Notes: generated from the letters alone by a model not told the origin. Counted from the first letter of the whole stretch, positions 11,055 to 34,393 are shown. The stretch: 63,525 nt of DNA, filler included, from Octopus bimaculoides (GCF_001194135.2; 5 parts of 4 records of this genome joined end to end with filler, not necessarily neighbours in it); one strand, 5' to 3'. Made by a program: numbers and translations.

Positions 11055-11184
11055 CTTTCTTGAAGCAACCTTTCAGGGACAAAGTGATTTTCATGTTTTT
11101 ATAACTTGAAGGTTTAAATTTAATTAAAATCCCTCTGGCTTTTGTTCCACTTGGAATAGAAGTACTTGCATTAGCATGACGGGT
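11055..11184 (-). CDS. Exon B3, C-terminal part of module 3 (130 nt, phase 0-1)
   Basis: ggctttgcag|ACCCGTCAT...AAGAAAG|gtatgt; TRHANASTSIPSGTKARGILIKFKPSSYKNMKITLSLKGCFKK; aligns with B1/B2. Confidence 0.85.
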
Positions 11185-11634
11185 CTGCAAAGCCATAACA
11201 AATCTATTATTCTCAATGTAAACAAATAAATATAGTTTTCAATTTTCAATAAAATATAATACCTTTAGAAAACAATATTCTGAGCCATGGAACTGGTTGT
11301 TGTTAATTTTTAAAAATTTGTTATGATCTGGAGTTTCCTAATGGCTATTGACTGTGAATTCCATGTTTTGGTGTCAAAAAATTCTAAAGAACTTATATAA
11401 AGAATGTTTACTATAAACCAGGAGAGAGATGATATGTATGTTATATATTCTGTGCAGCAATAGGAAAAGTCAGCAATTTTCAAAATACACATAAGATATA
11501 TATCATATATTTACAAAATTTTTTTGAAAAATATCACATTTCTCACTAATAGCATCAATAAGCCAATGATAAAACCTTTTCTGGTCTCTTGATCAGTTAG
11601 AAATAGCAGCCAAATTCTCTCAAATACACTGTAT

Positions 11635-11945
11635 TGACCTTAATAATAATAACAACATCAAAAAAATACCTTAGGAATGAGAACCCAGGTTCAAAATTTC
11701 CTCAAGACACCTGATGAAGGCTCGAGGGTATATCAGCCAAAACATTGAGTTAACAACAAACAAGATGAGTACAAATATCTGTCAAATGAGTGGCTGTGTG
11801 ATAAGTAGCTTGCTTACCAACCACATGGTTCCGGGTTCAGTCCCACTGTGTGGCACCTTGGGAAAGTGTCTTCTACTATAGCCTCGGGCTGACCAAAGCC
11901 TTGTGAGTGGATTTGGTAGACGGAAACTGAAAGAAGCCCGTCGTA

Positions 11946-12014
<69 letters not shown>

Positions 12015-12291
12015 ATATGTTTGTGTGTCTGTGTTTGTCCTCCCCCCACCAACATCGCTTGACAACTGATGCTGGTATGTTTACGTCCCTGTAATTTAGT
12101 GATTCGGCAAAAGAGACCGATAGAATAAGTACTAGGCTTCCAAAGAATAAGTCCTGGGGTCGATTTGCTCAACTAAAGGCGGTGCTCCAGCATGGCCACA
12201 GTCAAATGACTGAAACAAGTAAAAGAGTAAAAGAGAATGTAACAATGTAAATAATGTACATAATTCCTCATCTCCTAAATATAGAACTGTA
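11635..12291 (+). mobile_element. 5'-truncated repeat with hammerhead-like motif, interrupted by a SINE
   Basis: Homologous to the reverse complement of about 54985-55222; gacac-CTGATGA-aggct...agcc at 11706-11738. Confidence 0.7.
11788..12235 (+). mobile_element. tRNA-derived SINE, family 1
   Basis: gagtggctgtgtg..aagtagcttgc...ggttcagtccc head, internal (TA)n, aaaagagt tail; paralogs at 14911, 29041, 43523, 47797. Confidence 0.9.
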
Positions 12292-12599
12292 TCAAATTAT
12301 CAAATTCAAATAAACTCAATTATATATTCATTATCATTCTGATAAAGCAATTTTCTTCAAGTCCATGAATACAACTCCTTTAAATTTAATTGTCCATAAA
12401 TGAAATTTTTTTTTCATTAAGAAAATAATCTCTTTAGCTTCTTTAAACATGGAAAGAATAATGAAATATGCTTTCTAGCAATTAACACAGTTCAACTTGA
12501 TTAACTTAAAATTCAACATTTAGCACAGTTCACGAATCTTTCTTTTCATGGAGCGCTTCTTTAATTCAACAGTTCTGGCATGTTGATTTTTCATCCGGA

Positions 12600-13883
12600 T
12601 CTCACAGTTTGATTACAGATAGTGTCTGTAGTCTCAGACTCATCTGTATCACAGTTCATAGTCTCTTCACATTCAACCATTTAGTTGAACTGTTGCATTC
12701 CCAGCAGCTGTCCACAGATGACGGTGATTTCGTCGATACTGCCTTCTATTTGACATCGTTATGTTGTAGGATCTTGGTGCATCATCAACTGATTTGACAA
12801 CTCCAGTCTTCCATGACTGATTTTCTTGAATCCTGACTTGCTGTCCAGGAGCCAAAAAAGGTAACTCTCTATTACCTCTGTCGTAGAAGTACTTTTACTG
12901 GTCTTGAAGTACTTTCAGCTGATCCTGTAGCAGTTTCTGGTCCTGAGGTTTCAGCAAAGCATCCGACACAGGTAAGCAACTCTTCAGGTGCCTGCTCATT
13001 AGCATCTGAACTGGTGATAGATTGACCATGTCAAGTGGTGTATTTCTGTACTTAAGTAGAGCTAAGTAGACATCTCGGCCACTAGCTTCTGTTTTCTTAA
13101 ACAGATTTTTTACTGTCTGGTTTGATTGTGGGTATGTCAGACTTGATGTTGTGTGTTTCAAGGCCCATTCTTGACCAAAGTTATGGAACTCTGTACATCA
13201 TGAACTGCCGTCCGTTATATGTTATGAGCTCATCTGGGATGCTGTGTCTGACAAAGACAGATTTCACTGCTGTGATTGTCATTTTACTTGATAGGTCAGG
13301 CAATTTCACAATTGCAAGGTACTTTCAGAAATAGTCCATGCACATCAGGTAGTCAATGTTTTTGTACACAAACAAGTTGGCCCCGACTTTAGTCCACGGT
13401 CAATCAGGAGATTTCATGGCTCTTCAACGATTATTTCAGATTACTCTTTCTGCTCTCAGAATATTTTGATACAAATTCTTCAATTAAACAGTCATTCCTA
13501 GCCAGAAGATAACATCTTTGGCTCTGAGTATGCACTTTGTCGCTCTGAAATGAGTATCATGAATTCTGTTCAACATTTCTGTTTTTAGTGTTGCAGGAAC
13601 TACAATTTTGTCAGCTTTGAAAATGAGATCATCAACAACAGTCAGTTCATTTCGAATATTGCAGTAGTCTCTTGCACTTGCTGGAACATCATTTCTGTTT
13701 TCTGGTCATCTGCTGTAAAGCTGGACCTTGTGCAAATTCCCTTATGATATTTGTCATGCACCAGTTTATGGGCAGCAATTTTTGTCACTGCTGCTGTCAG
13801 AGATGCAGTGATTCGGTTGTCAGCTGTATGGATATCTAATAATATGGACACTACTCTCCACCAATTACAATATTTGAAAAGTA
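12600..13883 (-). mobile_element. Ty3/Gypsy integrase remnant
   Basis: HFRATKCILRAKDVIFWLG, YPQSN, ALLKYRNTPLD..LSPVQMLMSRHLKS, WKTGVVKSVDDAPRSY...YRRNHRHL. Confidence 0.88.
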
Positions 13884-13918
13884 TTATTAAAGCATAATTC
13901 ATGAAGATACAGTTTTAA

Positions 13919-32285: not shown

Positions 32286-32318
<33 letters not shown>

Positions 32319-32712
32319 CCCCCTCTCTCTCTCTNNNNNNNNNNNNNNNNNNNNNNNNNNNNNNNNNNNNNNNNNNNNNNNNNNNNNNNNNNNNNNNNNN
32401 NNNNNNNNATATATATATGTAAAAATATATATATATACGTATGTATGTACATATACGTAGTGTGGGGGGGGGGAGAAATTGGGAGAGTATGTCCATACAT
32501 ATCAAAGCACACACGCACACATATATACAATGCATAAATATATAGTGAGATGTATCCACACATTCACAGAATCCTATAACCTAATATGCATATCCCCCCA
32601 TATTGACATGAATATATATAGATGTACATACATTTGTACTTATACACACTCACACAATAAACTGAAATGGTAGCGTATAAATGGTTTTAATTCAAAGGTA
32701 ATATTTACTAAC

Positions 32713-32754
32713 CTGTTGGAGTAGATCCTAAATATGGCGTTGAGCTTGGTGATA
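32713..32754 (-). CDS. 42-nt micro-exon, TPT type (phase 1-1)
   Basis: ttgcatttccag|TATCACC...CCAACAG|gttagt; xSPSSTPYLGSTPT. Confidence 0.85.
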
Positions 32755-33526
32755 CTGGAAATGCAAAGTAGATAACTCATTTTACATTCAGGTAGAAACA
32801 AAATATAGCACTAGAAACTATGTTTACTCATTTTGGGTAATTTCGAAAATGGTATTAAAATAGCAGATATGTTTCTACAATTGCTTTCTCAAATTGCAGT
32901 CTTTCATTTTCTTTCGATTAGTGTTTATGTTTAATTCGAAAGAAGTTAAATATTAAAGTTATATGGAGTTTTTGATTATGAGAGAGAGTATTGACCAAAT
33001 ACAGCAAATTGTATTCATGTTGTGTGTGAAATTCTTATGAATCAGTTTCTGTATTTATGTAATTACACACATACAAAAATAACATATTGTTATGAGCAAG
33101 AAATTATATTGAGCAAGAAATTATATTGAGCAAGAAATTATACTGAGATAATTTCTCCTTTGTACGACACATGTTAGATCACCGGTCTCTGGTTTTCTAA
33201 CGCAGGACAACAAACTTTTACTGTGGGTTTGTTAATATTTGAAGCATAGGCAGTATGATTTTGGTGTTATTTTTACTGTTTGGGCGAACTATAAAGCCTA
33301 CTCATTGACATGTGGTAAGTTAATTCGTGTTGGGAGTTCATGCTGGAAGCCGATGTGAAAAATTCAGGAGGCTGTGTGTGGCGTAATAATATATACACAC
33401 ATTTATATACATAGATATATGTAAGGTAAAAGAAAAAAGAAAAAACAGAAACAAACACATACAGACACCAAACACAGCAGTAACACATTAAAGCACATCA
33501 GATACAATGAAATATGATTAACTTAC

Positions 33527-33662
33527 TTATTGTTTGGAAACAGCCAATAATTGTCATAGTGACAGTCATTGGTTCTTCTGAGTTTACTGATTGAAAGTGA
33601 ATCAGAATCTGGCTTGCATTTGTTCCTTGTGGTATTGTACCATTTTCAGTTGCTTCAAAAGT
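33527..33662 (-). CDS. Exon B1, C-terminal part of module 1 (136 nt, phase 0-1)
   Basis: ttttttcaatag|ACTTTTGAA...CAAACAATAA|gtaagt; TFEATENGTIPQGTNASQILIHFQSVNSEEPMTVTMTIIGCFQTI. Confidence 0.9.
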
Positions 33663-34130
33663 CTATTGAAAAAAGAACCGGATATGATACTAAGAGAACA
33701 CAGTTTTACAGAGTGAAGTTAATACCCAGTGTCTTGTCTTATATTTAGACTACAGAAAATTAAACAGTCATTAGAATCTGAAATCCATAAATGTAACCAA
33801 TGGATTACACTGGAATTGCCATATGGAATGTGCCATTTCTTCTTTTTCATTATGCAGTGTTCAATTAAAATATACGATATTTCAGGTATACGATCATAAC
33901 AAGTACAAAGATAGCTAAAACAGTATAATATCAAATTAAATGCCTTCTAGTCATTAAATGCCTACAATGTGATTCTCAAAATAGACAATTATATCATTAA
34001 AATTTCAAAGCCACAAAATAATGCATAATTAATTTAAAACAAATGTGAATGAATAAACTTTATGTTTAAAAGAAAAATCTAAATTTTAAAAGGTTAAATT
34101 AATATAAAAGTAAATATTTATGTCACTTAC

Positions 34131-34393
34131 CCTAATTACATTTGAATGATCTTTCTGAAAACTTATGGTAAACGTGGCTACATTTTTATGCTTCTGTAAA
34201 ATAATTGCTGCTCCATATTTCAAAATGTTGTTATCAATTTTAACTCTAACTTTTGATGAAGCAGATGGCTTTATTTTCCAACCTGTTCCAAATGGCCGTA
34301 GCACTTCTGGAGATTCCTTAGTGGATATGAAGATATCAGAATCTGGGATAAATTTCCCTTTTGCCATTCCATCCATAAATCTGCAGTTTTCAA
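34131..34393 (-). CDS. Exon A1, N-terminal part of discoidin-like module 1 (263 nt, phase 1-0)
   Basis: ttcttgttttag|TTGAAAACTGC...GTAATTAGG|gtaagt; xENCRFMDGMAKGKFIPDSDIFISTKESPEVLRPFGTGWKIKPSASSKVRVKIDNNILKYGAAIILQKHKNVATFTISFQKDHSNVIR. Confidence 0.9.

Follow-up and report, generated by a model that had tools for sequence, protein, structure and literature searches.

Three two-exon cassettes in Octopus bimaculoides predicted to encode a compact, divergent relative of the discoidin domain

A stretch of the Octopus bimaculoides genome (GCF_001194135.2) contains three two-exon cassettes, here called A, B and C, each predicted to encode a compact domain with the fold of discoidin (F5/8 type C) domains. 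The window, as we use the term, is the whole stretch of 63,525 nucleotides, filler included, in which five parts of four records of this genome are joined end to end and are not necessarily neighbours; all positions are counted from its first letter. We analysed the piece from 3582 to 34438, which has a G+C content of 34% and holds numerous runs of N and many repeats. All three cassettes lie on the minus strand, from 34393, the first base of exon 1 of A, to 11055, the last base of exon 2 of C. The best overall explanation, and one in which we have reasonable confidence, is that these are three cassettes of intron phase 1-0-1 that encode a compact discoidin-fold domain belonging to a divergent, Pfam-invisible subfamily, and that the domain may act as a binding module of a secreted protein.

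An initial annotation, made from the DNA alone, had described three paralogous modules of about 133 residues with a cysteine near each end, each split at a phase-0 intron and flanked by phase-1 introns. Using a pattern search and six-frame translation, we located the motif set of the first half of the module at 34370, 27768 and 14816, and that of the second half at 33617, 27184 and 11139. Exon 1 of A (A1; 34131-34393, 263 nucleotides) has a phase-1 acceptor (ttttag/TT) and a phase-0 donor (AGG/gtaagt) and encodes (V)ENCRFMDGMAKGKFIPDSDI...HSNVIR; exon 2 (A2; 33527-33662, 136 nucleotides) has a phase-0 acceptor (caatag/ACT) and a phase-1 donor (ATAA/gtaagt) and encodes TFEATENGT...IIGCFQTI. Module B has the same exon lengths, with B1 at 27529-27791 (263 nucleotides, splice sites as in A1) and B2 at 27094-27229 (136 nucleotides), and an assembly gap (27073-26974) begins 20 nucleotides past the B2 donor. 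Module C is formed by C1 (14568-14839, 272 nucleotides; acceptor ttttcag/GT, donor AAG/gttcgt), encoding (G)YLCDLVEGMDSTSLIPDTK...KLNTK, and C2 (11055-11184, 130 nucleotides; acceptor ttgcag/ACC, donor AAAG/gtatgt), encoding TRHANAST...LKGCFKK. All six exons have an AG acceptor preceded by a pyrimidine tract and a GT donor, and at all three cassettes these sites give the phases 1/0/1 that had been claimed. No assembly gap falls within any exon or module-internal intron.

The coding sequence of each module is 399 or 402 nucleotides long (133 or 134 codons) and specifies exactly two cysteines, at positions 4 and 129 of modules A and B and at positions 4 and 131 of module C. The pattern that had been reported as common to the modules (GM..IPD..I..ST.E.P.V.RP...GW, GA..L..H.NV, A..I.I.F and GC) is present, as are the N-glycosylation sequons: NGT and NAS in A and B, and NAS and NMT in C. 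The identity between A and B is 92% at the protein level and 95.7% in exon DNA; C is 34-36% identical to A in amino acid sequence (BLASTP E 1e-24), a resemblance beyond chance. Hence the description of the modules as divergent applies to C and does not apply to the A/B pair; A and B are young tandem duplicates, and C is an old paralog. Six-frame scans of the whole piece, first with a hidden Markov model (HMM) of the module and later with a broader family HMM, matched these six exons and revealed no further or hidden module. Phase-1 acceptors and donors make all three cassettes 1-1 symmetric, as are the copies in O. vulgaris and O. sinensis; this is the symmetry of exon-shuffling modules, which can be inserted or duplicated in frame. 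In those octopus copies that we examined, the internal intron is in phase 0. A split into two exons is likewise seen in other paralogs, with a break point that varies between about positions 78 and 88 of the profile.

AlphaFold models of A and C were computed with a family profile, an alignment of 34 full-length domains. Both models are confident all-beta sandwiches, with a predicted local distance difference test score of 93.3 and a predicted template modelling score of 0.86 for A, and corresponding scores of 93.6 and 0.88 for C. When the model of A was compared by Foldseek with structures in the PDB, all 50 of the 50 matches listed were metazoan discoidin domains (neuropilin b1/b2, the C2 domains of factors VIII and V, the DS domain of DDR2 and the C2 domain of lactadherin), with E values from 1e-6 to 3e-4 (best 1.4e-6) and query-normalised template modelling (TM) scores mostly between 0.54 and 0.66. 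The best match of C was neuropilin b1b2 (E 5e-8), and the top families were the same as for A (neuropilin b1/b2 and factor V/VIII-type C domains), with DDR2 also in the list; F-type lectins and the carbohydrate-binding modules CBM32 and CBM22 appeared from rank 8 on (E ~3e-5).

For a comparison at the level of sequence, we assembled a reference profile of six canonical discoidin sequences, which gave 196-378 bits on the named proteins when checked against the PDB. hhalign aligned the octopus family with this profile over 134 columns, from the first cysteine to the last (E 5e-6, probability 86%); against the single sequence of factor VIII C2 it aligned 22 columns only, comprising the N-terminal motif (E 0.03). 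The matched elements are GM..I.D..I, R(L/P), W, a (V/I)xVDL strand, a YVK/NVK strand and the (G/A)C end. Discoidin domains carry the signature C-x-x-P-L-G-M-x-x-G-x-I-x-D-x-Q-I at their start and R-x-E-L-x-G-C at their end. In the family studied here the former is kept in a reduced form, C-x3-GM-x4-IPD-x2-I, and of the latter (G/A)-C alone is kept, after a hydrophobic strand. All 34 domains have the last cysteine, and conservation of the first is 90% or higher. Sequence homology to canonical discoidin members is detectable, with moderate support from hhalign. We conclude that the family, as judged from profile alignment and predicted structure, is compact and remotely related to the F5/8 type C domains; on all three counts (AlphaFold, Foldseek and profile alignment) the discoidin-like identity first proposed for the modules has held up. 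By analogy with discoidin domains, the terminal cysteine pair would be expected to form a disulfide joining the termini.

Several results weigh against this assignment. A Pfam search of A, B and C gave nothing relevant and no family at its threshold. The discoidin model PF00754 did not match A, B or C at E<=10, as the initial annotation had anticipated in suggesting that the modules might score poorly, and it matched none of the 34 isolated family domains at E<=1; its top score in a full-length relative (P0008) was 18.3 bits, compared with a gathering threshold of 28.2 bits. The TM-scores of A to solved discoidin domains are moderate, and the accompanying root-mean-square deviations are 4-6 Å. 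A phmmer search of the modules against PDB sequences found no significant match, and a profile search of the PDB gave only weak, non-significant matches to CpGH89 and TXNL1 (E 0.14-0.2). We take the matched regions to be the CBM32 module of CpGH89 and the PITH domain of TXNL1, both of the same fold superfamily, and to that extent these weak matches also fit a remote relationship to discoidin domains. Because the Pfam threshold is missed, we class the domain as a divergent subfamily and not as a member of PF00754.

The same results could be read as the mark of some other member of the galactose-binding-domain-like group (an F-type lectin, a CBM or a PITH-like domain) whose N-terminal motif arose by convergence. 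Such a reading would accommodate the lectin and CBM32/CBM22 matches of C, the restriction of the PDB profile search to TXNL1 and CpGH89, and the missed PF00754 threshold. However, metazoan discoidin domains head the list of structural matches for A as well as for C, the hhalign alignment with canonical discoidin domains runs from cysteine to cysteine, and CBM32 is itself classified with the F5/8 type C domains; we therefore regard convergence from another branch of the superfamily as very improbable. CBM32 modules and F-type lectins share the superfamily with the octopus modules, but they rank below animal discoidin domains in the Foldseek search with C and do not have the terminal cysteine pair. 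With metazoan discoidin domains, the cassettes share the beta-sandwich fold found by Foldseek, a cysteine at each end, phase-1 intron borders and tandem occurrence in extracellular proteins. They differ from them in that the octopus modules are about 25 residues shorter, are only about 15-20% identical to solved domains, and have neither the TQG motif nor the R-x-E-L-x-G-C end.

The compact discoidin relative is not confined to octopuses. We searched 1.84 billion representative sequences with the module profile and obtained 37 matches, about 30 of which are plausible relatives; seven (P0007, P0011-13, P0020, P0024 and P0026), which are ankyrin-repeat proteins or repeat proteins with bacterial-type features, were set aside as spurious. 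A word-indexed homolog search recovered only four octopus fragments. Its earlier description as lineage-specific was too narrow, since members of the subfamily occur in a flatworm and a rotifer as well as in molluscs. Among the relatives is a mucin-2-like protein of Patella vulgata with 4007 residues, three VWD domains, C8, TIL and five LDLa domains; others are a mucin-2-like protein of Liolophura sinensis and proteins of Argonauta hians. The relative in Macrostomum lignano carries VWD domains, and that in Didymodactylos carnosus carries TSP1 and TIL domains. Linkers rich in Thr, Ser and Pro usually separate successive copies of the domain in these relatives. Many of the short matches are predictions that contain exon 1 only, and further copies are likewise split into two exons.

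A mucin-like setting is also found elsewhere in O. bimaculoides. A locus at CM046602.1, 7,748,395-7,779,607, contains three more two-exon modules and a region rich in Pro, Thr and Ser (PTS), annotated as LOC106867630, which lie between a gene model with VWD, C8, TIL and LDLa domains and one with TSP1 and TIL domains, all on the same strand and with 4.7 kb of N. These models probably represent one large mucin- or SCO-spondin-like gene that the annotation has split into three. Within the window itself we found neither a PTS exon nor a PTS-rich reading frame on either strand, and none of the ten longer transposon-like or uncharacterised reading frames that were scanned matched VWD, C8 or TIL; the piece does not reach the 5' part of the gene.

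Two further observations concern relatives in other assemblies. A fragment of 376 residues from Patella (P0006) has two of the domains and a Pro/Thr/Ser linker and bears the RefSeq name 'DNA-directed RNA polymerase II subunit rpb1-like'. It shares a 90%-identity cluster with the 4007-residue 'mucin-2-like' protein (P0042), and the repetitive linker presumably gave rise to this name. In the assembly of ENA entry ERZ21867824, which has 34% G+C, the 336-kb contig ctg121812l contains two further two-exon modules (L005 and L006) about 49 kb apart on one strand, and may represent a better-assembled related locus from another species.

F5_F8 domains have been reported as characteristic of lophotrochozoan mucin-like proteins, and have also been reported in insect hemolectin (Lang et al. 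2016, PMC4948705). The proteins of that report offer a similar context, in which VWD-C8-TIL and discoidin-type domains stand near PTS regions. However, their discoidin domains were found with the Pfam model, whereas the Patella protein P0042 and the Macrostomum proteins P0030 and P0039 have no PF00754 match at E<=0.01. Either the compact subfamily was missed in that survey or different proteins are concerned. Literature searches on octopus or mollusc mucus with discoidin or FA58C yielded no description of the compact subfamily.

We next consider what the domain might do. In discoidin domains, loops called spikes protrude from one end of the barrel and carry the site that binds ligand or membrane. 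In the hhalign alignment the family has no counterpart of seven residues at FTNMFAT of factor VIII C2 (spike 1) or of six residues at QGVKSL (spike 3); we take spike 1 to comprise M2199/F2200 and spike 3 to comprise L2251/L2252. Because these two loops are shortened, membrane insertion of the factor V/VIII type, and with it lipid binding, is unlikely. It counts against a defined binding function that no ligand can be read from the sequence, since the nearly invariant positions of the family (C4, M10, I21, R33, N71 and C129) look structural. Contacts between lectins and glycans have been proposed as cross-linkers in marine adhesive secretions (PMC9382459). Given this proposal, the relatives in which the domain is embedded in PTS regions, and the report of discoidin-type domains in lophotrochozoan mucins (PMC4948705), the likeliest role, which we suggest tentatively and from context, would be extracellular binding that cross-links glycans or matrix partners.

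The 1-1 phase symmetry of the cassettes allows them to be duplicated, or spliced head to tail, with the frame preserved. Splicing head to tail would leave seven residues between the last cysteine of one domain and the first cysteine of the next. Short interdomain linkers are also found between C1 and C2 of factor VIII and between b1 and b2 of neuropilin. The product would be a secreted extracellular protein with one or several compact discoidin domains, in which the domain may bind or cross-link glycans, or partners in the matrix, within mucus or matrix and would not anchor the protein to membrane lipids.

A bolder proposal draws on CysD (Mucin2_WxxW) of vertebrate MUC2 and MUC5. The likeness is positional only, in that both are small cysteine-containing globular domains interrupting PTS stretches; the sequences are unrelated, CysD has a WxxW motif and many more cysteines than the octopus family, and nothing here shows the same cross-linking role for the latter. 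On this proposal, an undescribed, spiralian-wide, spike-less 'compact discoidin' family would correspond in invertebrates to CysD: a globular knot, clamped by a disulfide, that binds glycans and so connects the PTS regions of mucins and adhesive secretions non-covalently; and the PTS-free array of octopods would be a fast-evolving locus of secreted lectins whose copies are homogenised within species. We consider this speculative and rather unlikely in its entirety.

The fold and the superfamily are already known, and tandem discoidin domains are common in extracellular proteins; the compact family, though real, is thus a fairly ordinary divergent offshoot of an established domain. The novelty lies in recognising, across Spiralia, a compact subfamily that is invisible to Pfam, and in correct exon models for several octopus fragments. 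In the annotation of molluscs, flatworms and rotifers, Pfam-invisible domains of this kind are left blank or the genes that contain them are split; the octopus model fused to a retrotransposon, described below, and the limpet fragment named as an RNA polymerase II subunit are examples of the resulting mis-annotation. Models of invertebrate mucins, and of proteins whose domain sets resemble those reported for adhesive secretions, would benefit from a profile made for the subfamily. Should the domain prove to bind glycans, it would become a candidate for cross-linking the mucus of invertebrates non-covalently. The octopus locus itself gains only modestly, through corrected annotation of a few uncharacterised fragments.

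Gene models in two species bear on the exon predictions. LOC118768321 of O. sinensis (XP_036370448/9) is the direct ortholog of C (86.5% amino acid identity), and both of its isoforms, X1 (P0045) and X2 (P0003), use the junction between C1 and C2 exactly as predicted and end in a terminal exon encoding ...GLSYCKHMCQV before the stop codon. The coding part of the corresponding O. bimaculoides exon lies at 6766-6800 on the minus strand, where an acceptor (ccag/GC) precedes (G)LSYCKHMCQV and TGA, in agreement with the O. sinensis C-terminus. A cassette exon of 33 nucleotides and phase 1-1, encoding (V)IPVDFETPYQ(G) with AG and GT intact, lies at 8339-8371 on the same strand; it is included in O. 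sinensis isoform X1 and skipped in X2. For the A/B type, a partial RefSeq protein of O. bimaculoides (P0002) has the exact junction between exon 1 and exon 2, and LOC128251384 is a paralog with 96-97% DNA identity to B. In UniProt entry A0A0L8FRM4_OCTBM (P0004), C1 is followed by a reading frame from the intronic retrotransposon, a wrong splice in this 2015 model; the presence of the C1 sequence in this entry identifies the piece as O. bimaculoides draft sequence. LOC118768321, A0A0L8FRM4 and LOC128251384 are all annotated as uncharacterised fragments.

The intron between C1 and C2 contains the remnant of a long terminal repeat retrotransposon (12580-13914, minus strand), which is not part of the gene product. 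Its sole Pfam match is a weak one to an integrase zinc-binding domain, in one reading frame and just below the cut-off. The same retroelement occurs at the orthologous site in O. sinensis (L004 11312-12526, 90.7% identical); the insertion thus predates the split between O. bimaculoides and O. sinensis.

The exon frame is open in all seven copies examined, from three species: A, B, the copy on an unplaced O. bimaculoides contig (L002), two copies of O. vulgaris, C, and the O. sinensis ortholog of C. Both cysteines are kept, and exon lengths equal those of the orthologs, in each of the six complete copies; L002 begins 24 nucleotides into exon 1. In orthologous non-coding DNA, indels occur at a rate of 7.2 per kb, which for each ortholog pair gives P = 0.057 for the absence of an indel in 400 nucleotides, and when substitutions were placed at random the frame stayed open in 20-26% of trials, likewise per ortholog pair. 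The ratio of non-synonymous to synonymous substitution rates (dN/dS) was 0.43 for C between O. bimaculoides and O. sinensis (dN 0.071, dS 0.164) and 0.48 between A and B. Furthermore, although only 34% identical, A and C have retained a common fold and exon structure. We conclude from these alignments and models that the reading frames appear to be maintained by selection while the surface of the domain evolves fast.

Three results are at odds with the view that the cassettes encode a functional protein. Between A or B and the O. vulgaris copies, dN/dS is 0.77-1.03, which is almost neutral. The DNA identity of the A/B exons (0.89-0.92) is no higher than that of neighbouring non-coding DNA (0.85-0.95), and the amino acid sequence of A/B is therefore only weakly constrained. 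In addition, the annotated proteins that use the modules are short fragments starting at internal Met codons. These values would be expected if the A/B cassettes, and possibly C, were decaying exon remnants of a former mucin-like gene that no longer makes a functional protein. Further points that fit decay are that no database protein has A or B as placed in the window, that C is matched only by the O. sinensis RefSeq protein and the mis-spliced 2015 O. bimaculoides model, that we detected neither a signal peptide nor a 5' exon in the window, and that transposon fragments fill the locus. Decay is nevertheless hard to reconcile with seven open frames out of seven, and with cysteines and exon lengths conserved in six copies out of six, where indels are so frequent nearby, or with the dN/dS of C, the fold and exon structure common to A and C, and the use of the predicted junctions by RefSeq models in two species. 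Hence we consider decaying remnants unlikely and prefer the view that the frames are under selection. As a separate observation, the two O. vulgaris copies differ by few changes, with a dN/dS of 2.6.

A different question is whether A/B and C belong to one gene. The acceptor of C1 is in phase 1, and in both O. bimaculoides and O. sinensis it lies, together with an in-frame cysteine, upstream of the annotated start codon. Since both features are kept, C1 must be spliced to some upstream phase-1 exon. We searched both the window and O. sinensis for a conserved exon with a Met codon, a hydrophobic stretch and a phase-1 donor ahead of C1 and obtained only unshared microsatellite noise, and the donors of A2 and B2 lie on the same strand 12-19 kb upstream. 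We lean slightly towards a single transcription unit containing both A/B and C.

Several features of the locus nevertheless pull the other way. The region 4791-23066 of the window is collinear with the O. sinensis chromosome sequence that holds the ortholog of C (L004). The stretch that joins A/B to C (about 23300-26280) consists of reverse-transcriptase fragments and a gap of 671 N. In O. vulgaris the A/B locus is followed by unrelated sequence (L001 26-34 kb), which includes a Na/Ca-exchanger gene on the opposite strand and has no counterpart in the window. No link between A/B and C could be made through O. vulgaris or O. sinensis, as only dispersed repeats are common to L001 and L004. The modules could thus be real while A/B and C come from different genes or places brought together by a scaffolding artefact, with the copy number and order of A/B also wrong. 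Collinearity that is limited to the C side, the joining stretch with no single-copy link to either comparator and the O. vulgaris downstream sequence with its Na_Ca_ex gene all favour an artefact, as do the arrangement of the spacers described below, which requires another unit or a misjoin, the third A/B-type copy on an unplaced contig of 964 bp, and the O. sinensis models of C, whose start lies within the module and which have a 3' end of their own. The opposite view draws on the requirement of C1 for an upstream phase-1 exon, with the A2 and B2 donors suitably placed, and the failure to find any other candidate for that exon. We regard such an artefact as a serious possibility, somewhat short of even, and keep a slight preference for one transcription unit.

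The order and number of A/B copies are affected by gaps, which lie at 28941-29040, 29415-30374 and 32335-32408 between A and B, and at 25555-26225 (671 N), 21070-21244 and 15547-15847 between B and C. Downstream of A2 is a spacer (X; 32409-33107, minus strand) that is collinear with the spacer between the O. vulgaris modules, and directly upstream of B1 is a second spacer (X'; 28163-28851, minus strand) that is 87.9% identical to X. The O. vulgaris locus (L001), which is free of N, has two modules with one such spacer between them. From the duplication of X and X' and the O. vulgaris arrangement, the tandem unit is exon 1, exon 2 and spacer. Hence either a further unit is hidden in the gaps at 28941-29040 and 29415-30374 or there is a misjoin at that place. 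The unplaced O. bimaculoides contig (L002), which encodes P0002 and is 96-97% identical to B in DNA, reads through the point of the gap at 27073-26974 into sequence resembling that downstream of A2. Counting this contig, O. bimaculoides has at least three copies of the A/B type.

Tandem copies are closer to each other within a species (95.7% in exon DNA for A and B, 95.5% for the O. vulgaris pair at L001 14985-22716) than between species (88.7-91.5%), and the introns of the two O. vulgaris copies follow suit at about 98% identity. This pattern fits gene conversion or independent duplication in each lineage. Duplication of haplotypes in the assembly was considered for A and B and rejected, given their divergence of 4-6%, the 12% divergence of X and X', and the presence of two copies in the N-free O. 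vulgaris locus as well.

The locus also contains repeats of several kinds. In the stretch joining A/B to C, matches to RVT_1 in two overlapping frames (23892-24609, plus strand) mark a retroelement fragment. Two copies of another repeat, at 3652-4171 (minus strand) and 20244-20648 (plus strand), are 95% identical; the frame at 3971-4171 matches DUF6451, and O. vulgaris has another copy at L001 10109-10600. At 11788-12238, 14903-15339 and 29043-29300 there is a dispersed repeat, about 400 bp long, that resembles a short interspersed nuclear element and ends in a TA/CA microsatellite; L001 and L004 each hold at least six more copies of it, and microsatellites of this type flank several of the gaps. 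Finally, a tandem repeat at 18323-19288 includes two copies of a 233-bp unit, 93% identical, detected by Tandem Repeats Finder at 18695-19161 and surrounded by older copies, and the copies each hold a short open frame, G.LHRVTAAFVEYINSLA.CF.GDCQNDVDASD.NPIRF.

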